Shown here: positions 4,516 through 48,900 of the stretch, one piece after another
Numbering within the stretch: position 1 is the first letter of the stretch
How the letters are laid out: the number at the start of each line of letters is the position of its first letter
Assembly (NCBI GenBank): GCA_973895155.1
Contig: OZ316897.1
Location: forward strand, 1,204,515-1,268,514
Reading direction: 5' to 3'
Length of the DNA: 64,000 bases
From: Marsupella aquatica
Lineage: Eukaryota > Plantae > Marchantiophyta
Translations under genes and position numbers: made by a program
Notes under the pieces: generated by a model
What the model was told of the DNA's origin: nothing
Databases searched by the model: none
What the model saw: the letters and a program-made list of their open reading frames with translations, nothing else

Positions 4516-4839
4516 TGTGGGGAGAAATTAGATCAGGAAATACACTCCAAACATACACGTGCTCAATAGTTACGTGGTTTGCCTCAAGGTTGGCTACGTC
4601 CACGGGAAGACCAAGCTTTATTAACGGTTATGTGTCTACTCAAGCATCACCATAGCTCCCATCTCTTCAAGCTCTCATCTCTTGCTATATCACTGTGTTC
4701 TCTCTTGAGAACTCTCTTGTATGTTCTCACACCACATACAAGTTGAAGAGATAAGGACCAATCTCTTCAACTAGGGTTTACTCTAACCCTAGTTAACATA
4801 CTAACCATAGTTCAACCCAAGACTGAGTTAACCTCTACA
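4516..4839 (-). repeat. 3' LTR of copia element
   Basis: Direct repeat of 9736-10059, offset 5220. Confidence 0.96.
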
Positions 4840-5033
4840 AACTCCCCCTTGACTCACGTCTTGGGAGGGTTCATAACATTGTCTTTTCCTTACAAGTTCC
4901 TCCGCGGGAAGTTCAAGACAGTAGGGCCAAAAGACCCTCCCCCTAATGCAAGGGTTAACTAGAACTAAGCCGTAGCCGATAAGCCATCGGATGGAGTACT
5001 CATATAGAGACATTTTCTTGGTTAACTCTATAT

Positions 5034-8000
5034 TTACAATATTTGTAAATAATTACAATGCCTTGAAAAACTATTGGAGTCTAATACTTTGGTAAAAGCA
5101 TCCGCTGGATTAAGCTTTCCATCAATCTTGACAAGCTCAAATTCATCATCCGATAATGCCTGTCGAATGAAATGATAGCGGAGATCAATGTGCTTTACCC
5201 TGCCATCTATCACCTGATTCTTGGCAGTGTAAATTGCACTTTGACTGTCACAATGAAGATATGCACACTCTTGTGATAAACCCATCTCCGTGACAAGCTT
5301 TTTCAACCAAATGGTCTCTGATGCTGCTTCTGCTGCTGCTACATACTCGGTATCCATAGTAGACTTTGCAACACACTTTTGGAGAGTAGACTTCCAACTA
5401 ATGCATCCACCAGCAAGTGTAAATACATATCCAGTTGTCGATCTCTTCTTATCCAGATCACCTGCGTAGTCTGCATCCACATAACCTTGAAGCACTTTCA
5501 TATTGTTTGAACTTGCATCAAACAATAAACCCTTCTTAGTGGAACCTCTGATATAGCGCAAAATCCATTTCACTGCTTCCCAATAAACTTTTCCTGAATT
5601 TGCCATGTATCTGCTTACCTTGCTAACGGCATAAGCTATGTCTGGTCGGGTGCATACCATGAGATACATTAAACTACCCACAGCACTTTCGTAAGGAACT
5701 TTGGACATCAAACTTTTTCCTGTCGCATTCGATGGACAAAATGCTGCAGAAATATTGAAATGCCTTGCCAAAGGAACACTCTCAGCCTTAGCATCTGCCA
5801 TGTTGAATTTTGAGAGTACCTTCTTTGCATATCTTTTTTGCGTCAGCCAAAGTTTGGCTTTGTTAACATCCCTGACAATCTCCATGCCTAGGATCCTCTT
5901 GGCTGTGCCCAAATCCTTCATCTTAAACTCAAAACTGAGTTGGGCCTTAAGCTTATCAATTTTGCCCCTATCTTGTGCTGCAATGAGCATGTCATCCACA
6001 TAAAGTACAAGGATGACAAGCTTAAAACCTGTGTTGTTCGCACGCCTGATGTAAACACATGGATCGTACACGCTTCGCACAAATCCAAGCGATTTCAAAA
6101 ATTCATCAAAATGCTTGTTCCATTGCCTTGGGCTCTGCTTTAATCCATACAAGGATTTTAGCAACCTGCATACCAAATTTTCCTTGCCCTTTTTGCACAA
6201 AACCCTCTGGTTGTCTCATGTAAATCACCTCATCCAACGATCCATATAAGAATGTCGTGACAACATCCATTTGATCTAAAACTAGATCAAATAAAACTAC
6301 AAGAGCACATAGCAAACGTATTGTTGAATACTTTGCTACGGGTGAAAAAACCTCATTGTAGTCTATACCTTTCTGTTGAGTAAAACCCTTGGCTACCAAC
6401 CGAGCCTTAAATATCTTCTCAGCATCCTCTGTGGGTCCATCTTTCTTCCTATACACCCACTTGCTGTCAACAGCCTGCTTGTCACTAGGTAGACTTGTGA
6501 GTTCCCAAGTCTTGTTATCATGAAGTGATTTCATTTCCATGCGCATCGCCACCTGCCACTGTTGCTTCTCCATAGAAGCTAGGACCTCTTGAAATGAGGA
6601 TGGATCTCCATCTTCTATCACCAATGCATCAATAGATTCTTCATCCAAATCCAGATCAGAAGGAAGCCAAGTTCCATACCTTTCCCGGGCTTGACGTTTT
6701 CGAGTTCCTCTTCGCATTGAAGACTCTGGCTGATCTGATTGTGGTGTGCTTTGCCTTACAGTGGTGTCAACATATTCGTTATCTGACACATCCTTTCCCC
6801 TTATATGCACAATACGTGTTGAACTTGCCAGAGGTGTATTCACCACCATTATCTGATCATAGATGTCTCACATTCTTTGCAGTCTGTGTCTCAACTTGAG
6901 CTACCCATTGTTTGAAGATGGAAAGCACTTCAAACTTATGGGCAATGAAATAAATCCAAACAAACCTTGAGTAATCATTGATATACGATACATAGTATTG
7001 TTTGCCTGAATGTGAGGAAACCGGAGCAAGACCCCACACATCGGAATGAATATACTCAAGTACAATTTTAGAATGATGAATGGTAGTCGGAAATGGAGTT
7101 CTTGTTTTCTTGCCAACAATGCAATGATCACAAAAACTCAACTTGCATGCTTGCAATCCTGGTAGGAGATGTCGCTTGTGTAGGATTTCCAAACTTTTTT
7201 CACTCATGTGACCAAGCTGAGCATGCCATAAATTGATTTTCTCCTCCTGAGATGTGACCAAATTGACTTCGGCAAGAAGTGTGGTCCCTTCCAAGACATA
7301 GATGTTTCTTTTCCTCTTGCCAATAAGAACTTCAGTTGATCCATGCGTGACTGTTAACACCCCATCAGTTGCACTCCATTGATAACCCTTCGCATCCAAG
7401 TAGCCAAGAGAAATCAAATTCTTACACATTTCTGGAATGTGTCTGACATTTGATAGAGTACAGTAGTTGCCATTGGGTAGTTGAATCTTTACGGATCCAA
7501 TCCCTAAAACTTTGCAAGAATGATTATTTCCCATCAAAACAGATCTGTTGATAGGAGTGTAGGATGAGAAAAGTTCACGCATATAGCACATGTGATACAA
7601 GCAAGCGGAATCCAAGATCCATTGACAATCCTCAACTTGGGAAGTGGTACACAATGCAAATCCTTCACTATCATCTTCTCGAACAACTACTTGGGCTGAA
7701 GAACCGACAACTTCCTTGAATGTGTCTTTGACGCAACAATCCTTCTTCATGTGGCCCACTTTGTCACACTTCCAACACTTTATCTCACGAGTAGACTTGG
7801 ATGGTGATTTGGATTGAGATCTAGATCTGGATCTAAACCTCCTCCTACCAAAAGATCGGTCGTGAAACCTTCCTCGCTCCATGGGAAGTGGGTAAAACCT
7901 TTTGTTTTCATGAGATGGCTCCCTTGATTTGCCTCTTTCTACCAACAGTGTTGTTGATGATGAGGTTGAGATAGGATGAGCTGAAGAAACCAACTTAGAC

Positions 8001-8533
8001 TGCATGTCATCGGTCAATAGGGCACTCACCACATCATTGTAGGATATAGTTGTCTTATCACGGAATAGAAGAACTCGAGACAAAGATTGGTACAAATGTG
8101 GTAGTGAGCTCAAGAGTTGTAAGGCTTTCTTTTCTTCGCTCAAATGCTCCCCCAAATTCTCTAGGTCAACCACAAGATCATTGAACTGATCGATATGATC
8201 TTGAATCTTGACTCCATCAGCCATTTTGAATTGCATGAGCTTCAGGCTTGCATACATTCGGTTTGACATCTCCTTCTTGTAGTACTTGTTGCGCAATGCT
8301 TGAAACAAGTCCGTCACCGTCTGTGTTGCTTTTTCCTCGAACTGCTTCTTCACATTGTTTTTCAGGTACATGCCAACAATACTTACCGCTTGATCCTGGA
8401 GATCATGCCAATCATCATCTTCCATCTCCTTGGGTTGAGATCTTAGTACCTTGCCTAGGCCCATCGCCCTAAGTGCATCCCTCACGTTACGTTCCCACAT
8501 TGTATAGTCCATCCGAACATCAAATTTTTCCAC
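5034..8533 (-). pseudogene. copia gag-pol (gag, zinc knuckle, protease, truncated integrase, RT, RNase H)
   Basis: CWKCDKVGHMKKDC knuckle; WILDSA protease; HHCC of integrase; stop at 6857 in RHL*SDNGGEY, then loss of the rest of the integrase core; frameshift near 6200; YVDDML; ADAFTK. Confidence 0.92.
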
Positions 8534-9721
8534 CTCAAACCTTTGACCTCCAATCCTAGTAGTGCCATCGCTGGAATGCCAAATGTAGTGTGGAGTCGCC
8601 TTTCAACAAGAAATAAATGTCGAATGCTCAGATGTGGGGTGTGAAAATAAGGCCAAAATTGAAAGTTGGTGAATTTTGAAACTGATCACTCCTATATGTA
8701 GCCCACAAGGTAACGCTCCAAATTCTGAAAACGGTTTGTCAAATGGACTCTCGAGTGCCGAGAATTTTTACTCCGACCGGAGGGGGTAAAAGATAAAATA
8801 ATTACCCCTCGAGGGAATCTCTTATGCCAAAGATTCCACTAGTATACTTTTTCAGAATTGAACGCACCAATACTTGCCTAGCTTCCCCAAGTACGCCTCT
8901 CCAAAAGTTGAAGTTGATCCGATTTTATTTGCCGCTCGGAATCTTTGACCTTCGATAAAAATTTAAGCCTCTAGAAAAGAATCTTTTTGAGAAATTTCGT
9001 CCGCCCTTGTACAGCCCCTGTGGGGGACTTCACAGGGGGCACTTCCCCCTGCCCGAGCCCTGTCGAGCCCTAAAAGGCCTCCTCGAAGTTTTCGACATCC
9101 TCGCACGTCCGCGGAAGTCGCGACTACTCGCGGTAGAAAGTACCCTGGGCGGATTCACTCAAATTCCCGTCTCAGTTTTTGACGAAATCCAATTCTGATT
9201 TCAGATTCAGAAACTAGACTTTGAGGGCATCAAGATTGATATAAAGAACTCGCAAAACGGTGGAGTAATGAGGGAGAAACAATTCGGTGAAAGTGACTGA
9301 TATTAAGTTATCCGCCATAGCCAAATTTCGAGCTCAAAAAATGAGAATTGAAATTAAGATTGCTTCTCAATCGATTGACAGAATTCAACGATGTTAATAT
9401 CGAAACGTCTAGAAAGACAAGGCGCTCAAGCGTATCTCAGTTTCAAGTCCCGATAGAACAATCAAAAAGACTGATCTGAGAAATTGACCTTATCTCTTGC
9501 CCGATAACGTAAATTGAAAACCGTCACTTACAATTGTTTCTGTTTCTGACCTCAGGCCTTCATTGCTTCACTGAAATGAGCCCCTGGTTGTGTGCTCCAC
9601 ACTTGTGAGAAGATTGAGTCCGATCTTCTTTCAATAGCTCCACTTTGAAGAGAAAATCATCCGCTATTCGCTTTGCTTGAAGCAAGTTCTATGGAGTTCC
9701 TAATCGACTGAAAAAATCTGA

Positions 9722-9733
9722 GCTCTAATACCA
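9722..9733 (-). promoter_or_regulatory. Primer binding site, initiator tRNA-Met type
   Basis: TGGTATTAGAGC on minus, 2 nt from the LTR; one mismatch to canonical TGGTATCAGAGC. Confidence 0.85.
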
Positions 9734-9735
9734 AT

Positions 9736-10059
9736 TGTGGGGAGAAATCAGATCAGGAAATACACTCCAAACATACACGTGCTCAATAGTTACGTGGTTT
9801 GCCTCAAGGTTGGCTACGTCCACGGGAAGACCAAGCTTTATTAACGGTTATGTGTCTACTCAAGCATCACCATAGCTCCCATCTCTTCAAGCTCTCATCT
9901 CTTGCTATATCACTGTGTTCTCTCTTGAGAACTCTCTTGTATGTTCTCACACCACATACAAGTTGAAGAGATAAGGACCAATCTCTTCAACTAGGGTTTA
10001 CTCTAACCCTAGTTAACATACTAACCATAGTTCAACCCAAGACTGAGTTAACCTCTACA
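9736..10059 (-). repeat. 5' LTR of copia element
   Basis: Direct repeat of 4516-4839; followed on minus by the PBS. Confidence 0.96.
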
Positions 10060-18265: not shown

Positions 18266-18722
18266 TGTTGGGTATTTACTCTTACGTCTAGGTTAGGTAT
18301 GACGTGGTTGGTACAACAACGTGGGTTGGTACAACTACGTGGTTAGGTACAACTACGTGATTAGGTACAACTATGTGGTTAGGTACAACTACGTGATTAG
18401 GTACAACTATGTGGTTAGGTACAACTACGTGATTAGGTACAACTATGTGGTTAGGTACAACTAAGTTGCACACTAGATCATAAGAGGCATGTGTGCTTGG
18501 AGAGGTAGAACCAAGGCTCATTGTTATGGAGCCACTTGAGAGATAGGGAGAGCTTACACTGTGCAGACTCGGTATAGCCGACGGGCTTAGAGTTCAGTAA
18601 AGCTCTCTTGTGTGTTCCTGTGGACGTAGCCTCAAGGAGGTGAACCACGTATCTCTTGTGTCGACTATTGTGCGTTGGATGGTTCATGGGCTTGCCGTTG
18701 CGATCGTCGTCTATGCTCAACA
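18266..18722 (+). mobile_element. Copia-type solo LTR
   Basis: TGTTG..CAACA termini; TSD GGAAG at 18261-18265 and 18723-18727; GTGGACGTAGCC..AACCACGTA motif shared with the 4516 copia LTR. Confidence 0.9.
18291..18463. repeat. 18-bp minisatellite (GGTTAGGTACAACTAYGT), about 9 copies, inside the solo LTR
   Basis: Direct reading of the tandem units. Confidence 0.93.
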
Positions 18723-18818: not shown

Positions 18819-19105
18819 CTCAGGGGGTTAACTAAGTGTATATTTTGGGGTACCACGTGTGATCCTAGCCTAATATAAATAGACCTATTTTATAAAGAAA
18901 ACATTCCAAAAATATTCTCCATTTTCAACATTAATAACCTATTTTACTTTATAAAAGGTATATATTAGAGAATATTCTATAAACATGGGGTTATAATACC
19001 TTCTTTTGCCTCTTACGCTTTTTAAAAATTTAGTTAATTTCTATTAAAAATACCTATTTTGGATCGCACGTGGTTCCTAAGATTTTTGATAGTCAACCCC
19101 TCGAG
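18819..19105. mobile_element. MITE with ~45-bp TIRs starting CTC(A/G)(G/A)GGGG and 8-bp TSD
   Basis: Left CTCAGGGGGTTAACTA..CCACGTGTGATCC; right (reverse complement) CTCGAGGGGTTGACTA..CCACGTGCGATCC; TSD TTTGCTAT / TTTGCTGT. Confidence 0.82.
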
Positions 19106-19596
19106 TTTGCTGTCATCAAACTGTTTGTTTGGGGAGCAGGTTAATGAATATGCACTAGAGGTTTGCATATATGCGGTTTGAATATCGCACCTACACTAGA
19201 GGAAGACAACAGAATATGGTTGAGCTAAGATTTGGCATACACCTTTGTGACAGGTAGCTGCACTAGGGGATGACAACAAAACGTGGTTGAAGCTAAGGCT
19301 TGACACACACCTATATTATAGGTATTTGCATGTGTATCAGTCAAGGGATGCTTTATCTTGCAGTTTGAGTTTCCTGTGGTCAACAATACATTGACTAGGG
19401 CTTTGAAGAAGGGCTCTCTGCTAAGGAAGAGAGAGGAAGTGTCCATGGCAGTGTACTCACAACCATTGCAATAGGCATTAATTTTCTATGTCTTTTATAT
19501 CCCGTTCAATCCATCCTTGGTTGTGTGGTCTATGGAAAATAACCTAACCTTTTTTGGGTATCATGTTTCTAAGTTTTTTGTGTTATCCACTTGCAG

Positions 19597-21526
19597 ATTG
19601 TGGACAACCTTGAAAGTTGGAACTTTATGAGAGTAAATAGACCTTTTGCTACGAGGCACATTTACTCTTCTCCTTCATACAAACAGCGCCAAGAAAGTAA
19701 GTATATCATGAGCCCCCGTTGGAGAAGAAAGTCTTGTCCTTGAAATAACAAAATACATGTTTGAAAAAATTCTAAAACTTAGTTACAAATCAAGGCATTC
19801 TGGTACACACATCCGAAAGGGTCGGTGTACTGTTTGACCTCAGCTGTAAATTTACAAACCTAAAAAATATGTTTGAAAAAACTATGAAAAGTTACATATT
19901 AAGGCATTTCGGTACACACATCCAAAAGGGTCGGTGTACAGTTTGACCCAAGTTGTAACTTTACAAACCTAAAAATATATGTTTGAATTTTTTTTTAAAG
20001 TTACAAATTAAAGCATTCTTGTACACACATTTGTAAGAGTTGGCGTCTTGTTTGACCCAAGTTGTAACTTTATGAACTTAATAATTTTTGTTTTCTTGTA
20101 GATGGTCAAACCAAAAAAAATCACCTGATTGAAAATAAATGTGAAGCATGGGGAGATGATTTTTCTGTTAATTTATTTGTTCAAATTTGGGTATACTTGA
20201 GCAAATTGCACCTTCAAAAAGAAAGGTTTGCACTGTCTTGGATTCTAAGAGATGAAAAAGTTCTTGTACTTTTTGTTACAAAGTACTCAATATCACGCTC
20301 AATAGATCCTCAAAGTTTTCCAAAGCTATACTTTGGAATGGGTATAAAAATTGCAAGGAAAGACAAAATGAAGTTCCTGTGTTCTGTCCGGATACACGGA
20401 AAGAAATTGATGAAATGTTTTCCAATCATCAATGTAGGTTGAACTTACCAAAACTCATACGTCAGTTCATTGGAATATTTTCTCACTATACTGAAAGAAA
20501 ACTTCAAACTATGAGAAAAGTTCAAGAAACCTCTTGTGCTACAAGTAGTTTTTTTTCTAAAGTAGAAGTAACTGTCCACCGTATCTCTTCCTCTCGTGTT
20601 GCACATTACAAAGGGTGCATCCTTGGAACATGGAATGGTAAGAAGACTAGTTCTTCCTGTGCTAATGTTGGGTTTATATTTAGGGACTTCCCTAATGATT
20701 TTGTGGTTATGGACAAAACCAATAACTGTACATATTTTTACGATAGGTCAGGATCCAAGCCTTATCTTATAGCAGTGGTTCTACGCCATCAAAAACTATC
20801 ATGTGAAACTATGAGTTTCATTTGAAGTTTATTAGTTTCCTTATTTGATTCACATTACGAGATTAAAAGGGGAAAAAACAAGGCATCATTCGAGAGTTAC
20901 ATGACAGGATTTGGTCCTTTTGATAATCCATATACAAGTCCAAAAGAGTATCTTTTTATACTCACAAAACAAAAATCAGGCATCTCTGAACAGACTGTGC
21001 ACAATCCATGACTTCCGCTTTTGAGGATTTAGTTGATAAGTACTCTCATCTTGAGCTTGTCAACATCATTTTGGCTCTTTATATGTGGTGGTGCCCTAGA
21101 GTGTTGGAAAGTTATTTCAAATACTCCCACCCATATCTTGCTCCTGAAGACCATGATATGTCATTTTTTGAGAAAGAATTGGAAAGTAAAGGGCCAAGCT
21201 CTTATCAACTTTACATCAGCAAAGATTTCTGCACCAAAATGCACGAAGATGAAGACACGGCAGAGTTTACATTATGTTATGCTAGTCATCTAGATTCAAC
21301 AATTTTGCCAATCGATTTTGTGATTCCTGAATATGGAATGCGTCTGGGAATTGAAGATGGCAACCTCTTTGCTTTCCGTAGTGATGTTGTACATGGCACG
21401 ACATACATGAGCTCAACTAGTAATGCCGCTTATGTAGGTGCTCTTACGATAAATAAAAATTGGATAGATTGTTACAAAGGAATCATAGAAATACTTAAAT
21501 TTGTTAGATTGTGTATCCACTTATAA
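19597..21526 (+). pseudogene. Spliced, degenerate gene with a C-terminal TET/JBP-like Fe(II) dioxygenase domain
   Basis: Exon 19597-19696 and GT..AG intron 19697-20101 join in frame to the 20197 ORF frame; further pieces 20379-20825 and 21008-21526 with frameshifts and stops; H-E-D at 21242-21250, FVIPEYG..DG.LFAF, distal H-G-T at 21392. Confidence 0.65.
19757..20075 (+). repeat. Tandem 109-bp repeat x3, each folding into a long hairpin, located in an intron
   Basis: Hairpin units start GTTACA at 19782, 19891 and 20000; core GTACACACATCC-N4-GGGTCGGTGTAC. Confidence 0.9.
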
Positions 21527-21621
21527 AACTTTCAAAAATGATTTCTTTCTAGTCTATAGTAGTGATCATAAAAACTTAACATTGCTAGACCTTTACAAAT
21601 GATTAAAAACATTTTTTCAGT

Positions 21622-21965
21622 CTATTTTGCACTACATTTTTGACAACTTCTATTCTCAACTATTTGATAAACATCCCAAAGCTCTTCCAAAAGTTCCATA
21701 CGAGCCTCTTCTTCCTCGAATGTTGGCTTGAAAAACATTTTCAGCAACCGATCATATTTCCATCAATACATGGATTTTCCTTCACAACCTCCGCTGACTA
21801 GCCCACTACAATGAATTCTTGGATTGTCTATGCATTCAGTTTGAGGACTAGTATTCATGCTGTAAATAGTCATAACACTACTGTCACATGAACTGCAACC
21901 AGACTCTTGCAACAGTCCAATCAAATTCACAGTACTACTCAAAATGCAGTAATCTAGATTGTCTC
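21622..21965 (-). pseudogene. Small degenerate ORF with CxxC motifs, unknown function
   Basis: ~110-codon frame ..ESGCSSCD..SMY*WKYDRLLKMFFKPTFEEEEARMELLEELW..RSCQKCSAK* with one internal stop. Confidence 0.35.
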
Positions 21966-22002
21966 ACAAAGATATAATTGTCATAGTGACTAGTCACTCA
22001 GG

Positions 22003-22308
22003 CCCGGGGTCCTCACTTCTTTTCTTCCGACCCATCATGCGCGAATAAGTATAGGGTTTTTTTATTGGCTTTAGTGAAATACTTTTAAATTTTTGTTTAA
22101 GAAGATTAGGGTTATTTTAATCCAATTTTGAGAATTATAAGAATCATAGGGTTTTTTATTATCAAATATAGGAATATTCTTGGAATATTCCATTAAGTTA
22201 GGGGTAAAGAAAGTCCTAAAAAAACTTTAATGACTTAACTTTTAGGGTGTTTATTCCCCCAAAACTTTGAGCGTGATATGGGACACCCCTTGGATTGAGG
22301 CCCCCGAG
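22003..22308. mobile_element. MITE with TIR C(T/C)CGGGG(G/T)CCTCA and 8-bp TSD
   Basis: TSD CACTCAGG 21995-22002 / CACTTAGG 22309-22316; AT-rich interior with GAATATTC motifs like the 18819 MITE. Confidence 0.78.
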
Positions 22309-22569
22309 CACTTAGGCAATTACTTTTTTTGTCACCGAATCAGTCATGTACTTAAAAGGTAGTACAATATAGCATGGTGAAATGTTTTGTGTGTGCTGAT
22401 CTTTACAAATTAAAGTAGCAAATAGTCTCACGCTTATGATAGCATCCACATAACACTACATGTAGTTAAAACGTATGTGTTCTATGTACATTTACGTTTT
22501 CTTGGAGATACTTCTATCTTAATACTTCCAGGAAAGCTAGAAGTAGCACCATCATCAAACAAAGAATGC

Positions 22570-22974
22570 TTAGGAATATATATCTCGTAATCCACCTGCA
22601 TCTCGTTTGTTGTTCATTTGAGCAATGACTTTCCCTGCCTGGTTTGCTGTCAAATTGACCAAAATGTCCACAGGTTCTTTGAATGAATGACGTAGCTGTC
22701 TCAACTGATCTATCGCTTCTCCTCTTGTATGACATTTCAGTAATTTCATGCTCTCTTTCCTTGTCAGTGTTTCATTATCAAATGAAACATGTTTGTAACG
22801 TAGACATTCTTTTACAATGCCTGCACACAAGTCCAGATGTACATAAGAATCACACAATATATAATCTAGTATAAAAAGAATTTGCCATGTATATATAGCT
22901 AAAAAATTTAGAAAGTAAGATTCATACCAGATGTCGGATACTCTCCATGCATATCCAAAAACATTTGTTACCAT
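22570..22974 (-). CDS. Hypothetical protein downstream of the helicase
   Basis: 134-aa ORF whose ATG overlaps the stop of the upstream ORF; no recognised domain. Confidence 0.35.
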   Translation of the reverse strand: MVTNVFGYAWRVSDIWYESYFLNFLAIYTWQILFILDYILCDSYVHLDLCAGIVKECLRYKHVSFDNETLTRKESMKLLKCHTRGEAIDQLRQLRHSFKEPVDILVNLTANQAGKVIAQMNNKRDAGGLRDIYS

Positions 22975-23282
22975 TCCTTTTTAGCATCAATGAGAAGACT
23001 CATGCCCTTCACACTTATACCACCTTCCCACTCTGTCATCTCTATCCCCAATGAATCTGCATAGCTAATTTGTTTTGGTGTAGGCTCCTTCATTGGTTCC
23101 TCCCCTTTATCTTCTATGTCTTCATCCTTGATATCAACAAGGATCATTCGTAAATCCTCTTTGGCTGTCGGGGTTCCGTGTTTTGTTGCCGTTGCTCTTA
23201 CTTTCACTTCAGGCGACAATTCAGATGCCAAGTACGTTGACTGGAGATTGTTGTGTACCATTTCCGTAATTGAAAACAACAT
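22968..23282 (-). CDS. Hypothetical protein with a PTPKQISYADSLGI..SLLID motif
   Basis: 104-aa ORF directly downstream of the helicase stop; small helical motif of the T-x-KQ-xx-YA-x-LGI type. Confidence 0.4.
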   Translation of the reverse strand: MLFSITEMVHNNLQSTYLASELSPEVKVRATATKHGTPTAKEDLRMILVDIKDEDIEDKGEEPMKEPTPKQISYADSLGIEMTEWEGGISVKGMSLLIDAKKEW

Positions 23283-23375
23283 TCTCAGTTGCTTTCAAGT
23301 TCTCTGTGTTGTGCAAGTTCCTCTTCGGTGCCATTTCAAAAGATCTGCGCATGTCATTCCCCAACTTACTACATC

Positions 23376-23624
23376 TCATTCTCTATAGACAATAAAATCC
23401 ATAGGAGATAACTTACCCACAATTTTTAAATTCTTCCTGTTTGTAACACGACTTAACATCACATATGTTAGACCAGGAGCAAATGCTTCAGTTAGCACAA
23501 CCAGAACTTTTCCAGTTAAAGTACATCCTTGTGATTTATGTCCTGTAATCAAATATCCTAACATTAGTGGAAATGTTGACTTCTGGTAACTAATCATGTT
23601 CTTGATTCTTTTGTATTTAGTACA
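23376..23624 (-). pseudogene. Pif1-family helicase, C-terminal piece (motifs V and VI)
   Basis: STFPLMLGYLITGHKSQGCTL..EAFAPGLTYVMLSRVT. Confidence 0.9.
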
Positions 23625-25250
23625 TGTGACCGGGTTCCCGTCACTAAAAATCCTCGATAATTGTTTAACTGGGTTGTGCCATGTAAATAACCATTGTAAA
23701 TACCGTTTTTAAAATTTTTTGAAGTTACTTCCGTCATTATAAGTTGGTAATGCCCCGGCGGGCTTAACTTATTCTTTTTTCTCTCTCGCAATAGTTCTGA
23801 GGTTTACGACAACCTAAGCGAGCACTTGTAGGATTTACCGTTTAACTTGGGCTATTTTTGAGACCCCAATAGCAAGGTTTAAGGAGACAAACTTTAAGTT
23901 TTATGGTTTAAGGGGGGTTTAAACAAAATAAAGGGGGAAACCCCTTGTAAACAATGGGGGCTAAGAAGGGGTAGAATTGAGTGGGGCCAGGTGGAGCCCG
24001 GGAAGGCAAGCCCCCTCACTAAAGGGCTGCTGGTCCATAAGGGGCACCCCTAGGGCTTGACATGTGGAATCTTGGGGGCTAAGGAGGGAGCTCTGCGAGT
24101 AATAAGGATGAGAAGGGCGAGTGCCGGGGTGTGAGCCGGGCCAACGCATGGAGAGAGCCGGGAGGCGCAGTAGACAGAGCGCAGGAAGTCGGGGGGGAGG
24201 CTAATTTTATCCTCCCAAGAGGGGGCCAAACGGCAGCCGAGGCAAGCAAGCAGCCGGGAGGCGCAGCAGACGGGACGAAGACTGCCGGGGCAAAAAGGAA
24301 ATGCGCCCTGCATAGGGTGGCGTGAAGGAAGGGGGGAAAATTAAATTCCCCCAGCCTCGGAGGTGACAGGGCACAGTGCGAGCCCTGCATAGGGCCGTGT
24401 GCTGCCAGGTGGACGCTCCCACGAGCTGTGTGAGAGGGGGACGTGGGGCCGCGAGCTGGGGCACGCATTAGTTGTGTGGAGGGGGATTAAATCCCCCGAT
24501 TAAAGGAAGGACGGGGCCCACAGTTAGGTCCTCCCAGGAGGAGGCCGCAAGGCAGCAGCCGGGGCACCTGCCGGCAGCCGAGTGAGGAAACCGGGGGGGC
24601 TTATGGAGGCGAGAGAGAGAGAGAGAGGTACAAGGGGGAGTAAATGCTCCCCAACTAGTGGGAGGCAGGTACGGGGTATAGCGAGGGCGTGAGGTGGCAG
24701 CCGTGGACTGGAGCGCAAGTGAGGTACAGACGGGAGGCATCAGGCCGAGGCGCAACTGAATAAAGGGGGACAAGTGGTGCTCGATGGGAAGCCGCAAGCT
24801 AAGAAGGGCCATCCTTAAGTTAGTAAGGAAGGGGTTTTCTCCCCCTTCGTTTATTCTTTGGTTTTTTTCTTCTTCTCGTCTTTCTCCGCCACGCGCGACT
24901 CATTCCATTGCTGAAAGCAAACTTTGAGTTCTCACATCCCATGGCCGAAAGCTCTTGAGTGTCTCCCCAACTTTCTCAAGTGCCCCCTTGGTGCTTGGCT
25001 TGGAGAGGTAGGAAGTTGAATTGAAACCTCGTGACGGTAGCGCACCGACAACATCATTGAGTGACTTCTGGGAAATTGAGAGTGGTTCTTGATCGTGATA
25101 CGGGGGCCGTTCAGGCCAGGATTTAAATTCGGTGACGGGATTTTGTGATTGAGCTTTTTTTTGGAGCATGAATGCTTGATCAGCCCAAGTTCAGCGCGGC
25201 TTGCATTCGTAGATACAATGCCGCTTACCGTGAGTACATTGGGACACTAA

Positions 25251-27012
25251 TTGAGGAGGAGAGAAGAAAGAAGGGTAGCAATGAGCACTGGACCAACAAC
25301 AAGCCTCGCACCGGTTATGAGGAAGGTTTTTTGTCGAATTTACCCCAAGACCTCTGCCAAGGTGATGGAAGATTGCAAAGCTATGTTCCAGGCCATCGGG
25401 CTCACCGACTTCATGAGAGTAGAGATTAGAATCCCTCCAGGGAAGAGTTGGGACTTGGAGGCTGGAATGGAATTGGGCACGGAGGGGATTTATTTTGCAT
25501 GTATTCAGCGTTTGGTAACTCATGCAGAATTGGCTAAGCTTCTATTTTTGGAGAACCAGCAGTTCTCATTCATCCCCCGGAATTTAGCCGAGGATCTCAC
25601 GTTGACAATGGTGGCCTGCTGGGTGAACAATCCCACCTCCACCATGGCCATTCATCTCTCGGCTGTCAAGGATGCAGCACACGTCAAGGGATTTCTGGCC
25701 AAGGTTCACCAACGGGTCCTTGGTAATGTGAAATCCAGGGTAGTGAACGGGGAGCATTTCATAATTTCTCTGGATATTCAGAAACATCTAGCCCATGCTT
25801 ACAGATGGTGGTATTACGGATTGACCAAGCTATTGGCCGCTGATCCTATGAGTCTGAAACCGGGGGGAGCTTTGCATTTGATGGGGTCATTTTTGTTGGC
25901 CAGGGCAGAAGGATTGATTGCCTCCCCGGGCCCCAAAGAAGCTGGGTCATCCCTTACCATAGAAATCCGCAACATTGCCACTACCATCTTGGGGAAACTC
26001 ATGGAGGTGCCAATAGTGTCAACAGGAATGGGAAAAAGTCAAGTCGAGGAAGAAATCCAGGATGAGGAGTACACGTTGGAGTGGCTAGAATCTCTGGTGG
26101 GGAACCCCAAGGAGCCCCTTGCTTATGTCATTCCAGAGGTCTACTTGGCAGAATTACGGGATTTTTGTGAGGGGGCCCATGAGGGGCTCTGAAAGCTAGC
26201 CCACACATTGAGAGATGCGCTCTCAAGTAGGCCAACACAAGGGTGGAAACATTGCAGCAGGGTACCGCGTCGATGAAGGAGGTGATCAAAGCTAAGGAGG
26301 AGGCCACAAAAGAGAATGCCAAGCTTCTCCAGGCGGCTCAAGTGGAGATTTCTCACTTCTTGAGGGGGGCCTTGTCTACCAAGGCCAAAGAAGCGGAGGA
26401 AGTTGGGGTGTTGAGGGAAGCATTGGCCAAAGAGAAGCAGAATACGAGAGAAGTGGAGAGGTTAAGAGGTCAGATTGCAGAACTACGGAGTCAGGTGGGG
26501 ATCTTTGAGACTAGGGCCAAATGGAGTGAGGCCTTGAGTTTGGGGAAGCAGAAGAGTTCCTGCCCACCTTTCCCCTGACCTGGTCTCCAAGGCCATTGAA
26601 GTACGGTCCCCTGCTGGAAGCAGCCAAGAAGAATCAGGAGAAGAATAAGAGCTTGGAGAAGAAGCTCAAGGAGGTACGTAAGTCATTACGGGAGGCCCAG
26701 GTCAATATGGGAACCCCGGGGATGCCGCCCAGATCTGTGACACCAGGGACTCCTATGGCCACCGGGCAGGTTTTACCGTTGGAGTTGCAGTCCGGGGAGG
26801 AGGCTGCTTTGTGGAAGGATACCATCGGTGAGGGCTATGTCATGGCTTGGCAAGCCTTGGCGGCATTGAGGAAGCATGGGAGCACTAGCGGGAGGAATAC
26901 ACCTGTGAAGAAGAAGAGAAGCGGAGAAGTCTCCACTCCAATTGAGAGCGACGAAGAGACCAACTCACGGGGCTCAAGCCATGGCACTGTGAGTGAGAAG
27001 GAGGAGGACTAG
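25251..27012 (+). pseudogene. Retroelement accessory protein with coiled coil (arm A)
   Basis: ORFs 25251-26192, 26243-26578 and 26596-27012; clear paralogy to 31088-32426 (AKVHQR, WWY.GL, LMxSFLLAR, PEVYLAELRDF, GQVLPLEL). Confidence 0.7.
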
Positions 27013-27715
27013 GGTAGCCATACGGATTTGGTCGTATGATCTCTAGATTTTTAAACTTTTTGGAAAGGTGCACTCACGGGCTTGTTGGAAAGAGCTCACG
27101 GAGTTGATTTCAACAAGAGGCAGCGCTCCTCAAATGGAGCCAGGATGAGTAAGTTAGGGCCCGACAAAGTTGGTAAGTAAGTGATATTGAAATGGCCATA
27201 ACTCGGTCGTCCGACGTCCGTTTTGGGAGCGGTTTTGTGATTCATGATCAGAGGGAGTGGGGCTACCCAAGGGTGAGCTCAGAGGTGCAATCAGAATGGC
27301 ACCTAGTTTTGGCAATAGTGGGGTTCCTTGCATTTTTGCGGTTCACGGAGCAATGTTGGGGCGCCGTCAAAGGCACCGTCGGTTCCATAGTTAGATTAGG
27401 GTTTTAGAAGCATGTGTGTGCTGCATGCTTTAGGAATAGGGATTTCTTTCATGAAGGTTTTAGCGGCACCACTAGGGTAGCCGCCATTCTTGTGACCCCG
27501 TGAGGGGTGCTTTGGTGTGTTTTTTTTTAGTATTTAAGGGGAGAGCCCCGGAATAGTAGGGGGCAAATAAATCTAGTGTTCATTTTAGGGAAGTTAGCTC
27601 ATAGCCAGAAGGGGAAATCGAGCCAAAGTAGTGAGGTAGAGGTGTAGCGCTTGGCACAGTGAGGCAGGAGTTGGCCCGAAAATGTAAATTTTGATCAAGT
27701 CTACCGACTAGCCGG

Positions 27716-28347: not shown

Positions 28348-28522
28348 GCCAACCGCTCTGTTTTTGATCAAGTCTTATGGACTACGCCACACACACACTC
28401 CTACTGGTCGTTGGTGGAGTGCTGTCACCACCCCTCCTACTCACATGGTTGACCAAACCGTGCAAGGATTCCTTAGACACTTCTTGGGAAAGAACACAAT
28501 CGTGAACCAGAAAAGGTAAAGA

Positions 28523-30230
28523 TGTTGTATAGATGGAAGAATCAAAAGTGTCTCTTATCACTTAAAAACTTGAGTTTCGATCCCTTTAAGAACAGAACTA
28601 GATTGAATTGAACATTTTTATCTTTTTGAGAGTTTTAGAGCCTCTTACTCTCTATTATTCACATTTACTCCTAATCAGTAGTAAACAAATTAATCAAAAC
28701 AAACACAAATGGTCTTCTGAGTTATAGGAGAGAATAAGCTTAGACTAAGATGATTTAATTAGCATTTTAACATTGCCACTCCTTAAGAAAGGACTCTGGT
28801 CTTAGCATGTATAGAATGGTAACTTGCTATCAATCTTCAATCAACCTTTCTCTTTAACCTATAATAATGTTGATTGTGGGAATTCTGCTCACCAAACCCA
28901 GGGTAATTTTCTGGTTACAAATGCAATGATAAACTTTAAGATGCCGTCAACATGATTCGACTAAGTATGATACATGACTTAAGTCAAATTCTAAAGTTTA
29001 TTCCAGTGCATAGTAATTGGTACTAATTACTCTGAGAATGGAATTTTGCCTCTCACAAACAAAATTCATCCTCAAATTGGCTAACGAATCTCGTCACAGC
29101 AAGTAAGCTTAGCAGTGAATTCGATGTGAATCTCAGAAGCTAATTATTAAACTCAATCACCACAAATGTGTCATGAATTTAATCATACTTCAAAATCAAG
29201 CTTTACTTCCATACAAGACCTTGACTCTCCAAGTCTTGTTACAATGGAAGGAGGAGAATTAGATAGCAAATTCCAAACTGAATAAGATTCTCTTTTCCCA
29301 TGGAGTAACTTTAAAAGACTTTATAGGTTTGGAAGCCTAACATAAAGGAGGTATGGAAATGTATACCCTTTTGAGACTAACAAAACTTGACAAAATATGA
29401 TTCTAATACTAAGTTCCAACAAAAACTAAGTCTAAGTGTTGAAATGGCTAAGTGTCATTAAACTTTTCTAATAGAATATAAGATTTGACTAGATTTCTAT
29501 ATTTTTAATTCCTCATAACTAACACCCAAAATGCTGATTTTCCTACAGTGGCTTGTACTACCTTCAATCTGCAAGCAGGAAAAATCTCAGACTTTTCTGA
29601 GTGGTCTAAGTACTTCAAAGAAATTGGATAAAAGTGTTGTTGGATGGAAATTGAATTTAACACAGATGTTTTTAAGTGTCGGAAACTAAGTACGTGGACG
29701 CTTTGCAAACCGTCAGAGTATTGGGGACACTTTCAGGAGCGTCCATACTTTTGTCATCGGGGTTAGGGACATTTTCCAAGGCGTCAAGTCTTGAAGTCGG
29801 ACGCTTTCAGAAGCGTCATAATTTTGGTGGACGCTTTCAGGAAGCGTCCAAAAAAGAATACTGTAGACAAAGACTTAGTAACTTTGAAAAAATCATAACT
29901 TCTTAACGGCTGCTCCGATGAAGCTCAAATCTTGCTAGGATAATCTCCTATGTTCATTCCATTTGCTGCCCAAGTTTCAGACATTTCTGAGGTCTCTATC
30001 ATTTTAAATAAAATAGGAGGAGATTTAACTTTGTAATCTACGTCAAACACTTAGAATCTGTGCAGAAACTAAGTTTCTTCACAAAAAGACTGCAAAAATT
30101 TGGGAATAAGCTCCAAACAAGGTAATCCAAACAAAATGTCCATCCACAATGCCACACCAAAACTTGAGGAATCAAACCAAATCCATATCTTTTGGCAAAA
30201 CGTCGTAACACATTGCAAGGACAACCTGGC
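28523..30230 (-). repeat. Diverged LTR of the gypsy family at 39515-48104
   Basis: Reverse-complement matches such as TTTCGATCCCTTTAAGAACAG, ATGCCGTCAACATG, TTGTTACAATGGAAGGAGGAGAA and the GACGCT..AGCGTC array; right end approximate. Confidence 0.82.
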
Positions 30231-30242
30231 CTCCTGCCGTCT

Positions 30243-33200
30243 GCCCAACTCCCTCCTCACTGGGGCAAGTGCTACACCTCTACCTCACTACGCTGGCTTG
30301 ATTCCCTCTTTTGGCTATGAGCTAACTTCCCTCAAACCAACACTAGACTCAGGTCCCCCCCTTCACTACTCCGGGGCTCTCCCCCTAAATACTCAAAACA
30401 ACACACCAAAGCACCCCTCACGGGGTCACAAGGATGGCGGCTACCCTAGCGGCGCCGCTAAAACCCTTCACAAAGAAATCCCTAACCTAAAACATGCGGC
30501 ACACACATGCTCCTGAAAACCCTAAACTAACTACGGGACCATCGGTGCCTTCGACGGTGCCAACCGTAATCATCCGTAGTCTCGGGGAAGTGAGGGGGCC
30601 ACTCATGGTTGAAACCTCAAATATGTCCAACTACTGCCCTGAGGGGAGCCTTGCATAGCTTTGCTCCTCCTGATCACGAATCCGTAAACGGCTCCGCAAA
30701 TAGACTCCGGACGACCCAGTTATGGCCGTTTCAGTATCCCGTACCAACCAACTTCGCGGGGCCCTATCTTCCTCATCCTGGCAAGATGTGACATCTTGCC
30801 CTATCTTCCAACAAGCCCGTGATTTCCCTCATCCATGGTGTTGCATAATTCAAAATCCGTACGACCAACGTCCGTACACCTCACTAGTCTTCTCTCGACT
30901 CACTCATGGAACCAGGACTCCACCCCCTAGAATCCTCACTACCAGCGCCTCCCAATGATGTGGGTGTAACAGTCCCAATCCTCCGTACCAGGGGAGTCCT
31001 TCCCGGGGTTTGGCCAGAGGTCCTTCGTCTCCTCAAGGCCGCCAAAGCCTGCCAGGCCCTCACATAGCCTTGGCTGACCGTGTCCTTTCATAGAGCGGCT
31101 TCCTCCCCTCCCCGCAATTCCAAGGGTAAGACCTGACCGGTAGCCAAAGGGGTTCCTAGGTTTGCGGTCCTGGGTGGCATATCCAACATTCCTGCTATCC
31201 CTTGACTAGGTGAGACTTCCGTTAGTAATGACGGAGACACGATGGCCCCGTGACTCCCTTGGGTTTCCCGTAATGATTTACGGGACTCCCATAACTTCTT
31301 CTCCAATATCTTACACTTCTCCTTGTTTTTCCTTGCTGAATCCAACATGGGCCCATATTCTGAGTCACCTCTGTTACCACCATCTCTATAGCCTTAGAGA
31401 CCAAGTCAGGGGGAGAGTAGGGCTAGGTGAGGATGGGCTTTTCCTCTTCCCCAACCTCAACATGTCGTTTCTCTTGGCCCTGGTCTCATGGAGCCCAACC
31501 TGACCCCGTAACTCCACAACTTGTCGCTTCAGTCTCTCCACCTCACCGGTGCTCTGCTTGAGCTTGGCCAATTCTTCCCTCAAAGCCTCCACCTCTAATG
31601 CTTCCTTAGCCTTGGTAGACAAGGCTCCGTGTAACTGAGAAATCTGAACCTGTGCCTCCGTAAGTTGTTTACCTTGCTCTTGGATTATCACCTCCTTAGC
31701 CTTTATTACTTCCTTCAAGGCCTGGTTGCTTGTCTGCAAGGTTTCCATCCTGGCGTTGGCTTGGTTGAGGGCCTCTCTCAAGGTTTGGCACAACTTCAGT
31801 CCCTCATGCACCCCCTCGCGGAAATCACGTAATTCAGCCAAATATACCTCGGGCACATCGTAATCAAGGGGCTCCTCCGGATTCCCCACAAGCGACTCCA
31901 TCCACTCCACCGTGCTATCTTCATCCGGGTCCTCTTCGGTAGTGATGTTGGCTGTTGGTTCAGACGGTGATTCCTTCGCGAGACTACCCAAGATGGTAGT
32001 TGCAATCCTCCGTATTTCCGTGGTGAAGGGTGGCACCGCTTCTCCAGTCTCCGGAGAGGGGAGGAGCCCCTCTGACCTGGCCAAGAGGAATGACACCATC
32101 AAATGCACGCTTCCTCCGGACTTCACATTTTTAGGATCCATGGCCAACGTTTTCTTCAGCCCAAAGTACCACCATCCGTAAGTGTGACTTGGGTGAGCTT
32201 TGATGTCATTGGCAATAGCCAATTGATCTCCACTCACCATTCCAGATTGCCTTCGGCCAAGCATCCGTTGGTGTATCTTGGCCACCAACCCCTTGAAAGC
32301 TGGTTCCTTGAATGATGAAAGGGGAATGTTGGTCACGGAGGTGGGATCTCTCACAACTCTAGCCAGCTGTTCCAACATAAGTATCCCTGGTGGCTCCGTT
32401 GGCTGAAAAGTGAACGGACAACTCATTCACATTCGGCTCCTTCACCCTAAACTCCTTCCTTCACTCGTATCACAATTCACTCTCTGGCCCAAAGAAAAAT
32501 CTCGATAACACAATCAAATGCCCACAGCCAGACCACCAAGAAAACTGTCACAAAAAGTCTCACGTACACGGCAATTATCCGACAATTATCCCCCAAATCC
32601 TTGCTTCCCTTAGCCCGAACGGTTCCCATGTCACGATTGGCTCCACCCCTATCACCAGGGCACCCCGACGCTGTCGTCACAAATGTTTCTGAAGCAAGCA
32701 TTCAATCCTCCAACACCACTCAATGCCGGGCTCCGGGAAAAGAACTAGGAAAACAACTAGAGAGAAAAACTCTGGGAAAATTGGAGAACTAGGATGCACT
32801 TTACAAAGGAAGTAGTTTTGAGGGAAGCTTTCGGCATCTCAAGGGAAGCGAAAAAAATCAAGGGAAAGAAAAAGGGGCGTGGTTTCCTTAAGGGCATAAG
32901 CCCCTTTTTATGTGTGCTTCGGGGTGCCAGGTGCCTCATATTGCCCCTTCCCCGTCTGGTCCTACTCGCCCAAGGATTAGGGAGTATTTACCCCCTTACG
33001 TGCGCCTACCTGCCTCCCGGAAGTTGGGGCTTAATTTGCCCCAACCACTACCTCCTACCTGCCTTTCGAAGTCTCCCGAAGCCTCCCTCCACCTGCCAGC
33101 TCCTTCCTACGCGCGGCCCTCTTACCCGGATCCTCCAAGGCCGGGGGATTTAATCCCCCCAACCTCAACACGCAGCCCTATGCAGGGGGCATTTTCCCTG

Positions 33201-39324: not shown

Positions 39325-39514
39325 GTACAAGATCTCACAACTCTTACTAGTTTGCCGTTACTATGCAGTTTAACAATTATTGTAGACAAGTCATTCTCAT
39401 CAAAAAGCAAATCATGTACTTCTCCACTACTATCGTTAGCTACTTCATTTGAAATATCAATATTCTCAGTCAATAAAACTCTACAACCAATAGCTATATG
39501 TGTTAGTTGATGAA
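39325..39514 (-). pseudogene. Pif1-family helicase, middle piece (2B region)
   Basis: QLTHIAIGCRVLLTENIDISNEVANDSSGEV..VRVVRSCT. Confidence 0.85.
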
Positions 39515-40904
39515 TGTGGTATGGGTGTCCCTGCAATTTTTTCTGGAAACTTGTTTATTTTTAGCATATCACAAGATTTACTTACACTTTAGACACCTTC
39601 CGGCCAACATTTACTTGTTCTGGACACTTATAGAAATATTTGACATCTCCGGCTTTCCTGACGATTCCTAGTGTACTTTGCCCGACGCTGTGACCAGCGC
39701 CCGTTTCTTTTACTCAAGACGCTGCGGAAGCGTCCAACCTCCTCATGACGCTTTTGGCAGTGCCCGACCGCCACCAAGACTCTATGAGGATTTCGACCGA
39801 CGCTGTGGAAAGCGTCAGCTTCAACACACGACGCTGTGAGCAGCGTCCACCCTAGTATTGACGCTGTGAGCAGTGTGAGCAGCGTCCGTTGGTTTTACTT
39901 AAGACGCTTCTAGCAGCGTCCAGATTCTCCCGACGCTTCTAGCAGCGTCCGCTCAACACTTAGTTTTTGAAGTAGATTACTAGTAAAGTAGTATTCTACC
40001 ACCCTTGTTGAAGTACTTATGCTGTGCTTCTCCCTTGTTTAGTTTTAAGCTTGGAAAGGCACGACTGTTCTTACCTCCTCCATTTTAGGATTCCAGCACT
40101 TATAAGACAGAGTAGAATGCTCATTTGAAGTAGAGAGAAATAGAGTTAATACTGTATTCAGAATTGAGTCTTCTGAATAGTTTTCTCCTCCTTCCATTGT
40201 AACAAGGCATGCTGTGAGTGTTTTGTATGGAAGTAAAGCTATATTGATTGAAGTTAAGATTGAATTCAAGAGATTCCTGTGGTGATTGAATTCAGTTGCA
40301 GATTTCTGAAACTCGTATTGAATTCACTGCTAGGCTTGCTTGCAGAGTCGGGATTCGCTAGCCAATTCAAGAATAGTTAATGATAAATGAGAAGTAAATT
40401 CTGATTCTCAGAGTAGTTAGTACTGTTGCTTTGATTCTGGAATATGGTTTAGAGTTTGACTGAATTGCGTATCGCTGATGTCAAACCATGTTGACGGCAT
40501 TTTAAATCATATCATTCATTTGCAATCAGAAAGCTTCTGCTTCATCAGATTGAGAATTCCATTATCATTAACCTTTGTGTTTTGAAGAGTGAGATGGATG
40601 AATTATGAGATAGATTTCATGTCTATACTGAGCCCAAATCCTTTCTGAAGGAGTGGCAGTAGCAGCTTGTAGTCTCTAAATCCTTACTCATTTCTTCTCT
40701 AATTCATAAATCAGAAGTTCAGTTACTTTGTTGTTTGTTTATTCGATTTTTTTATTGAGAAGTGAAGTCAACATAGAGCTCAAGACTCTAAATCACTCGG
40801 AGTGATAAAAGTTATACAATTCATTCTGAAATCTGTTCTTAAAGGGATCGAAACCCTGGTTTTAGGTGAGGAGAGTCACTTTTGATACTTAGCACTATAC
40901 GACA
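39515..40904 (+). repeat. 5' LTR of gypsy element
   Basis: TG..CA; direct repeat at offset 7200. Confidence 0.96.
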
Positions 40905-40910
40905 TCTTTT

Positions 40911-40928
40911 TGGCGCCGCTGCCGGGGA
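40911..40928 (+). promoter_or_regulatory. Primer binding site, tRNA-Asp type
   Basis: TGGCGCCGCTGCCGGGGA, one mismatch to the Athila-type TGGCGCCGTTGCCGGGGA. Confidence 0.85.
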
Positions 40929-42122
40929 ACGAATTTAAGATTGAATTGACGTACAGGCAGTGTATGCCAGAAGGAGCTAGACGGGAGAGGAATTCACGTT
41001 CTACTATAATTGTGAAGATGCGTCATCACTCCAGTTAAAAAGATGAAGAGCTTCCATTTCGAGGTGATGCCGTACTCTATCCAAAGCGCCCCGGAAGCTC
41101 TCTTAAGAGTATTGGAAAAATTTGTGGTGCCAAACTTAAGAGAAGAAACCGCCCTCCCACCAGAAAAGGCCTCACAGAGAGGAGCTGTTGCTCGTCAAGT
41201 TGCTTTGGAGATAGTCGAAGACACCAAAGACACTTTGAGTGACAAGTGAAGTTATTCTAACGTTGCTCGGGACGTATGATTTGTAAAATTGTCCAACCAT
41301 CCTGGTTCGTGTGACCGATGCCACCTATCCGATCTTTGGGAACATTAAGAATTAGGAATTTGAGGAATCGTTATGTTAATTCTTGGGTTCTGAGCCTGAG
41401 AGGGAGGAATGGCATACATTGGTTAACTATCACCTGGTGGGAAGATGAAAGTTTGCATTTAGTAATATTAAGGCTGAATGGTAGGATCACACAGGAGTGA
41501 TATTTAGTCATTTCCATTCGGGAGTTAGCGGAAAGAATCATGCACCAGGAATTGCGTAGAAGATTAGGAAGGAGTTAGACGTCTGATTAGTAGGATGGCC
41601 TAGTGTAGCGTACCATGTGGTAAAGAAATTTCAGGGTGAAGGAAGTCGGAGATTATGGGGAACGCCCGGTTCCAGTAATCGCCACCGTAAAGGAGATAAG
41701 GAAGGACGCCGCGAAGAGCGTCCAATGCGATTCGTCCCAGAAGATTCCGCAAGTCAGGACGCTTCGAGTAGCGTCCGATCCCAGTGGACGCTGTGAGCAG
41801 CGTCCGGTGGAATCTGTGACGAACCAACGTGCGCGACGCTTCTGGTGTGCCTTTCCGCGTCTCAACCTGAAGGGCGCACCAGAGAAAACGAGGTTTTAGA
41901 ATCTCGGCTGGTCACTGAAGGGAAGTATTAGCTACGGGATAGCAAGGGGGAGGAATCATGCAAGGGATGTTGAACGACGCTACGGGAAGTCACTTTGAGG
42001 AAGCAGGTTCATATCTCCCGGAGTGGGGTGATAACGTCGCACCTAAATGGTGACTCCTTGCATAAAGACTCCTGAGGAGCGGGTCTGGTGTCTCAAAATC
42101 ACCCGTGCTTGGAGAATGAGGG

Positions 42123-46637: not shown

Positions 46638-46714
46638 TGAAGAACATGTCACTCGCTTCTGATTCAATTCGGTCATGTCTTGTGGGGACACGGCGAAATT
46701 TAAGTGGAGGGCTA

Positions 46715-48104: not shown

Positions 48105-48900
48105 ATGAAACTTTGTGTCAGAGATCCATTGCTTTTGACCACTCTCGGCAGGAGCATTTGTATGGACATTAACTTCTACTATATATATGATCTATAGGAA
48201 AAAAAATTAGTAAACACATTGTGTTATATTTAGCCACATTATCTCTATGCGAACAAATAATCGTAGTATTCTTGTCAACAAATCTGTATCCTTCTTGTTC
48301 AGAGACAAAACATTGTTGCAGGCAATTGTCTATTGCATGCTGACTAGGATTAGTTAGACGGATAGAATTTAAGAAATCTAAGAATTGAGAGTCAGATGCT
48401 TGACAAATAAGAGATGTCAAGTGATACCGCTGCATATGTTTGTATAAATAATGAATACAAAGATAAATGACACTGAGTACATATATACTCAGTTTCATGA
48501 TTACACACAGGAGGCAATTGACACATATCTCCTACCAGAACAATTAGCTTCACTGTAAATGGATCATTTCCACGATTGTTACCTTGAAGAACTTCATGCA
48601 ATCGTGAAGCTATGCTTTTCATGATTTTTGGTGTAAGCATGCTGCATTCATCAATAACTATAACATGAGAAGAAGCCAAAGAAGCAAAAATACTATTACT
48701 TCTATGCAACGGTAATAAAGCTCCTCTAACTGGTATTTTGAATGCATGATGGACAGTCGTTGCCGAAGCATCTAGTCTAATTAATTGCAGCAACTGCTGT
48801 CAGTAGTGGATGTTAAAAGCACATTCTTTCCTTGTTGCTCCCAATAGCTCTTCATAAAACCCATAAAAAAGGTTTTACCTGTTCCCGGGGAACCTGTAAT
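48105..48900 (-). pseudogene. Pif1-family helicase, N-terminal piece (motifs I-III), frameshifted
   Basis: ITGSPGTGKTF starting at 48900; ATTVHHAF, VIVIDECSML, LVGDMCQLPPV; joins the middle piece in frame as WISDTKFH-QLTHIAIG. Confidence 0.9.

Follow-up and report, generated by a model that had tools for sequence, protein, structure and literature searches.

Can a transposon in a land plant carry an enzyme that modifies methylated bases in DNA? This question was raised by a stretch of 64,000 nucleotides from the liverwort Marsupella aquatica (the window, hereafter), in which a first-pass annotation had recognized a spliced but decayed gene for a TET/JBP-like dioxygenase beside a Helitron-type helicase gene, and had proposed that a rolling-circle element family carries the enzyme as an anti-silencing module against host methylation. 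Active DNA demethylation in plants is described as proceeding through the DME/ROS1 glycosylases, with TET enzymes as the animal route (PMC10573277), and transposon-borne TET/JBP genes have so far been described from fungi (PMC12730594). Our search of the literature found no paper reporting TET/JBP genes from bryophytes.

Weighing the evidence set out below, we consider it probable that the locus holds a decayed, intronless copy of a TET/JBP-like gene family, predicted to encode a base dioxygenase with an atypical co-substrate site, and that the neighbouring PIF1 helicase gene is an incidental companion.

An intronless pseudogene with a conserved HxD...H triad

The pseudogene extends from 20101 to 21526 on the forward strand, as delimited by phmmer and by tblastn of P0001, an intact homologue of 449 residues that is encoded without interruption on its own contig. 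As assembled, the coding sequence passes through three reading frames, namely frame 1 (20101-20279), frame 0 (20280-20930) and frame 2 (20931-21526), and ends at a natural stop codon (21524-21526). The peptide that had drawn attention to the locus is encoded within the forward-strand open reading frame 21008-21526, which yields a piece of 172 aa. This piece contains an HxD motif (His-Glu-Asp, 21242-21250, with the histidine at 21242-21244 and the aspartate at 21248-21250) and the distal histidine of an HGT motif (21392-21394), which together would form an iron-binding triad; the two histidines are separated by exactly the 50 codons that the first-pass annotation had counted. H.D and HGT are the most conserved columns in family alignments of 23-27 members, the histidine of HxD being invariant in alignments A2 and A4. 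Both histidines fall in invariant or near-invariant family columns, so the motif cannot be put down to chance.

Residues 6-46 of P0001 align with 20182-20307 in frame 1, residues 54-262 with 20313-20930 in frame 0 and residues 265-435 with 20945-21457 in frame 2, the second and third segments running through TGA codons at 20823-20825 and 20987-20989, respectively. Thus, the three frames together cover residues 6-435 of the 449, nearly end to end. Homology to the intronless P0001 is unbroken from 20182 to 21457, which argues against the spliced gene of the first-pass annotation. In that model, exon 1 (19597-19700) joined to an acceptor at 20100-20101 enters frame 0 and meets a stop. We therefore read the gene as intronless, given that P0001 is uninterrupted, that homology begins only at 20182 and that the exon 1 joint reads into a stop. 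Nor is translation from the ATG at 20102 supported; this codon lies in another frame, and an intronless gene beginning there would need the A8 run (20113-20120) to be one A longer.

The 5' flank upstream of the coding region is occupied by three tandem units of 109 nt with hairpins (19750-20093, forward strand), and a candidate intron reading of this segment lacks support. Contigs assembled from public sequencing runs of related plants, of unspecified library kind, span this repeat region with no splice joint but do not bear on expression or splicing.

A recent, polymorphic or partly apparent decay

As assembled, the pseudogene is dead, containing two frameshifts and two in-frame stops and having no in-frame ATG. 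The internal stops had been recognized in the first-pass annotation and are located at 20823-20825 and 20987-20989, as determined from the reading frames and tblastn. The frameshifts, placed there near 20385 and 20955, are instead situated at about 20279, in an AAA run (20278-20280), and at about 20930, where two extra bases occur in an ATAT run (20930-20931).

For comparison we used contigs from four public runs of related plants, comprising two coded organisms and two studies, which match the locus at about 98-99% identity. These contigs differ from the window at three of the lesions (n=3 differences): one more A follows 20279 in all four runs; the two surplus bases at 20930 are absent from three runs (X2-X4); and position 20988 is T in place of G in all four, turning the second TGA into TTA. 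With these three alleles applied, a script counting stops finds the frame open from 20101 to the natural stop, the sole remaining interruption being the TGA at 20823. With three lesions out of the four absent from contigs of related plants, the decay must be either recent, or polymorphic, or in part only apparent and due to assembly error. Two of the three allele differences alter the length of a short repeat, and could reflect either real slippage or consensus errors in the assembly of the window.

In the four runs, depth across 19100-23900 equals that of the adjoining non-repeat sequence, with only a few diverged partial paralogues, and the region lacks the appearance of an amplified element. 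A plausible history is that an old, low-copy stretch later received a MITE and, farther along, retroelements nested in one another and totalling some 24 kb.

The PIF1 helicase neighbour

The gene beyond the pseudogene is represented by two separated parts, both on the reverse strand. The part adjoining the TET-like gene (23376-23800) is the C-terminal quarter only of a PIF1-family helicase; it contains the motifs HKSQG and YVMLSR, carries at least one frameshift and matches solved PIF1 structures with E values of 3e-7 to 1e-5. The N-terminal part (48105-48900) reaches E 8.7e-11 against PF05970, with Walker A at 48894, DExx at 48658 and QLPP at 48529, and contains a stop and at least two frameshifts before ending at an LTR border at 48104. 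The sequences of the two parts are compatible with a single gene, now interrupted by nested retroelements totalling about 24 kb. ESM Atlas places the helicase with PIF1 clusters at 0.97, and a metagenome scan with the helicase piece returned nothing. The stops and frameshifts leave the helicase itself dead.

The helicase stop codon (23376-23378) lies 1850 bp from the TET-like gene, a distance that falls to about 1.55 kb when the intervening MITE is subtracted. Hence, the convergent, tail-to-tail arrangement at about 1.9 kb and the presence of a MITE between the genes were both correctly described in the first-pass annotation. The MITE is hAT-like (22003-22308), with terminal inverted repeats matching at about 13/15 positions, an 8-bp target duplication (CACTCAGG/CACTTAGG), very high copy depth and loose ends at both borders. 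Two open reading frames on the reverse strand, located just beyond the helicase stop (22570-23282; 134 and 104 aa), match no family and may belong to the helicase-bearing unit.

The label Helitron-type is less secure than that of PIF1. No Rep/HUH motif occurs in any of the six frames of the whole window, where another retroelement interrupts, at about 48950-49008, what lies upstream of Walker A; the designation is consequently unproven, and PIF1 helicase alone is seen. When compared with the Helitron Rep-Hel protein Helraiser (PDB 7lcc), the neighbour shares PIF1-type motifs and a C-terminus that matches weakly (E 0.083), whereas cellular and bacterial PIF1 structures score better.

Is the TET-like gene a transposon passenger?

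It is tempting to speculate that the TET-like gene was cargo of a Helitron, or of a PIF1 element without Rep, and that its intact form removed or altered the 5-methylcytosine of the element, which in this way escaped silencing. Such carriage has precedent in the fungal Helitron1 and Helitron2 families, which are reported to carry TET/JBP genes (PMC12730594), and would sit well with the tail-to-tail position of the helicase at 1.85 kb and with the similar decay and similar depth of the two genes in four runs. Nevertheless, the window yields no Rep/HUH motif and no identified termini, the region is low-copy in the four runs, and the adjacency of TET-like gene and PIF1 gene is a single instance: eight family loci from other samples have just coding sequence in common with the window and show no helicase similarity over the downstream sequence covered (at most 1.55 kb, on contigs of at most 4 kb). 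The want of Rep in the window, together with the eight related loci that lack a helicase on their short flanks, leaves both Helitron carriage and the anti-silencing role proposed in the first-pass annotation unsupported, and we judge this explanation improbable. We give slightly less credence again to its most specific form, in which a liverwort PIF1 element, Helitron-like and possibly Rep-less, once carried a TET-like modifier of 5-methylcytosine that lacks the arginine discussed below and works with a co-substrate other than 2-oxoglutarate, directed against silencing. Were this true, land plants would have their first example of such a transposon passenger, an arginine-less, TET-like enzyme on a PIF1 element.

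A different DNA transposon (CACTA/EnSpm or IS3EU-like) may also be envisaged as the original carrier, with the present gene as a remnant after nested insertions. The fungal EnSpm and IS3EU families likewise carry TET/JBP genes (PMC12730594), and the window contains a CACTA/EnSpm transposase on the helicase strand. This is encoded by three adjoining open reading frames (56665-60358, reverse strand) with Pfam domains Transposase_21 and Transpos_assoc at 58610-60358 and DUF4218 at 57586-58575, and its best named relative is from the leafy liverwort Calypogeia fissa (52% identity), in keeping with a liverwort host. However, 35 kb and several elements separate the gene from the transposase, and neither inverted terminal repeats nor CACTA termini were found to connect the sequence left of the gene with that on the far side of the transposase, which makes this a very unlikely origin.

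The reading that we prefer is that of a TET/JBP-like family copy for which the PIF1 helicase is a dead neighbour, the link between the two being probably incidental. Fungal Tet-like genes do ride DNA transposons, Helitrons included (PMC12730594); at the liverwort locus no carriage is shown and the host is a land plant.

A divergent protein family

A phmmer search of 1.84 billion representative proteins with the 172-aa piece returned 33 matches, 19 of them below 1e-10. The best was P0001 (E 1.4e-49), with 53% identity over the last 172 aa. Almost all matches derive from short Logan, JGI or ENA contigs, and the sole entry with a named organism is a hypothetical protein from the chytrid Geranomyces variabilis. 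The family is thus small, and it is unannotated; its full-length members measure 427-459 residues. Homology links the plant-type clade to a chytrid clade (hhalign 98.5%, E 1.8e-15) that includes P0024, P0029 and P0033, and P0029 has ordinary host genes for neighbours, no transposon lying close to it. Two Geranomyces species have four chytrid relatives, all annotated as hypothetical and located among ordinary host genes (for Geranomyces variabilis, L009 10001-11038).

Membership of a recognized family is not readily apparent from sequence. Five pieces of the window found no Pfam family, and all family members fall short of the Pfam gathering scores, both PF12851 (Tet_JBP) and PF20515 (Tet-like) remaining below the cut-off. 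Below threshold, PF20515 is the only Pfam family to recur (5 of 27 members, best E 0.0014), and a single member touches PF12851 (E 0.13); the neighbours retrieved by ESM Atlas, a language-model search, carry both families. Against the PDB, phmmer with the 172-aa piece gave noise only, and profile searches of PDB sequences with family alignment A1 and with the chytrid clade (A3) brought up no TET. A match to USP16 in the PDB profile search (E 5e-4) is located in a helical insert and was taken as spurious. A word-index protein search with the 172-aa piece returned no match, a blank of little weight given the length filter and word requirement of the method, and a metagenome scan with the closer family sequences found nothing.

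Fold evidence for TET/JBP likeness

For structural comparison the three frames were searched as separate pieces, and the intact homologue P0001 was folded in place of a joined window protein. The AlphaFold model of P0001, built from the family alignment, has a pLDDT of 75.6 and a pTM of 0.80. According to this model, an intact family member would be a protein of about 450 aa in which a helical N-terminal region is followed by a double-stranded beta-helix; the latter appears to carry a His-x-Asp...His iron site and to be nearest to the TET/JBP-type nucleic-acid base dioxygenases. A Foldseek search ranks CcTet of Coprinopsis cinerea (PF20515; PDB 7vpn/8jkk) first (E 1.3e-6), with CMD1 and TET2 next, and then FTO, AlkB and plant 2OG oxygenases. 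By VIA-align, the model scores Z 15.2 with TET2 (242 residues), 14.6 with CMD1 (248), 13.0 with both NgTET1 and CcTet (261 residues for the latter) and 12.2 with AlkB (174). The 172-aa piece of the window alone also folds confidently (pLDDT 81), but its matches are weak and mixed (E about 1e-3), including CMD1, CcTet and NgTET1 and also gamma-carboxylase and prolyl hydroxylases, because it is only half a domain.

The TET/JBP assignment of the first-pass annotation is thus upheld by the fold of the P0001 model and by the triad; it is not matched by significance for PF12851 or PF20515. A best match to AlkB or prolyl hydroxylase, named in advance as the outcome that would speak against the assignment, did not occur for the full-length P0001 model. 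That the family belongs to another class of double-stranded beta-helix oxygenase, such as AlkB-like repair enzymes or hydroxylases of proteins or small molecules, and resembles TET through a shared fold is a very slim prospect: AlkB trails TET2 by only 3 Z units, the C-terminal piece alone matches prolyl hydroxylases too, the 2-oxoglutarate arginine is absent and no Pfam threshold is reached, yet the 16 highest-ranked chains all belong to the TET family and align over 70-90 residues more than AlkB does, and the Pfam signals below threshold, like those from Atlas, are Tet-like without exception. From the modelled fold and the triad we conclude that the family is TET/JBP-like and too divergent for membership to be assigned on the basis of sequence.

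An atypical co-substrate site

In TET2 and NgTET1, an arginine 10-15 residues past the distal histidine (Arg1896 and Arg289, respectively) binds the C5 carboxylate of 2-oxoglutarate (PMC7854593). The first-pass annotation had remarked that no arginine follows the distal histidine of the liverwort protein, and the family alignment agrees: 12 residues past this histidine, both the window and P0001 have alanine and the other plant-type members have valine or threonine, while the chytrid-type P0024, P0029 and P0033 have arginine. As alanine, valine or threonine replaces this arginine in the plant-type members of clearly homologous clades, it is fair to infer an atypical co-substrate for the plant-type enzyme.

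The algal enzyme CMD1 had been put forward as a parallel, and it is an apt one insofar as CMD1 has no functional contact with the 2-oxoglutarate C5 carboxylate and relies on vitamin C (PMC7854593). The likeness does not extend to the residue itself; CMD1 keeps an aligned arginine, Arg410, that points away and whose place is filled by Trp358 (PMC7854593), whereas the liverwort copy has alanine.

Family members also share a conserved arginine in an 'RG' motif preceding GFGPF, which by alignment only corresponds to ...EIKRG... at about 20870 in the window. An N-terminal arginine of TET2 (Arg1261) and CMD1 (Arg244) touches the C1 carboxylate as well as the flipped base.

An intact enzyme would be expected to bind Fe(II) and to flip a DNA base into its active site, 5-methylcytosine being the obvious candidate, and may then oxidise or otherwise modify the methyl group of the flipped base. 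Its co-substrate site would have alanine in place of the arginine that holds the distal 2-oxoglutarate carboxylate in TETs.

Comparison with known systems

Each of the characterized relatives resembles the liverwort family in part. CcTet, the top Foldseek match, shares the HxD...H triad and belongs to PF20515, the one Pfam family matched, below threshold, by more than a single member; it differs in its identity of about 10%, in the alanine at the arginine site of the plant-type clade and in that no member of the liverwort family passes the Pfam cut-off. CMD1 (Chlamydomonas reinhardtii, PDB 7cy4-7cy8) is a TET homologue of the green lineage with a closely comparable fold, but is far larger, at about 860-870 residues in the solved chains. 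The catalytic domain of human TET2 (PDB 4nm6, 7ne3) gives the best Z and has the same iron triad; conversely, the liverwort family is devoid of the Cys-rich domain and of an equivalent of Arg1896, and has a different helical N-terminal region.

A TET-shaped liverwort family with an altered co-substrate site would raise the question of whether 5-methylcytosine is oxidised or hypermodified in some land plants. The locus alone adds little to this question, being a dead copy. What it does add is that its decay appears recent or polymorphic, and that the proposed Helitron link fails on present evidence.

Repeats and mobile elements around the gene

Repetitive sequence borders the pseudogene on its left side. 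The segment 18201-18722 is a repeat of extremely high copy number (depth about 1e5, compared with about 1e2-1e3 in nearby sequence) with a sharp right end at 18722, and holds eight tandem units of 18 nt at 18292-18489. A second MITE-like element of raised copy depth follows at 18848-19080, bounded by the terminal inverted repeats GGTACCACGTGTGATCC / GGAACCACGTGCGATCC (16/20). Each of the four runs includes one or two contigs in which 18722 is followed immediately by 22003, so that 3280 nt, with the entire TET-like gene, are missing. On its shorter side this joint spans only 27 nt, and its two positions are the end of the high-copy repeat and the start of the MITE; the two sequences could simply happen to adjoin at another genomic site, or the joint could represent a presence/absence polymorphism.

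Young retroelements are evident on both sides of the gene. A Copia element at 4516-10059 has 324-bp LTRs that are 99.7% identical, and the Gypsy element that splits the helicase (39514-48104) has 1391-bp LTRs (39514-40904 and 46714-48104) that are 99.9% identical. Between the two helicase parts, 25798-27674 and 30245-32182 are inverted, diverged copies of one repeat (67-77% identity), whose long open reading frames (25251-26192, forward strand; 31386-32426, reverse strand) have a coiled-coil look and match no Pfam family. A segment at 28518-29258 is about 69% identical, in reversed orientation, to parts of the Gypsy LTRs (40183-40909 and 47383-48104) and may be an old solo-LTR fragment.
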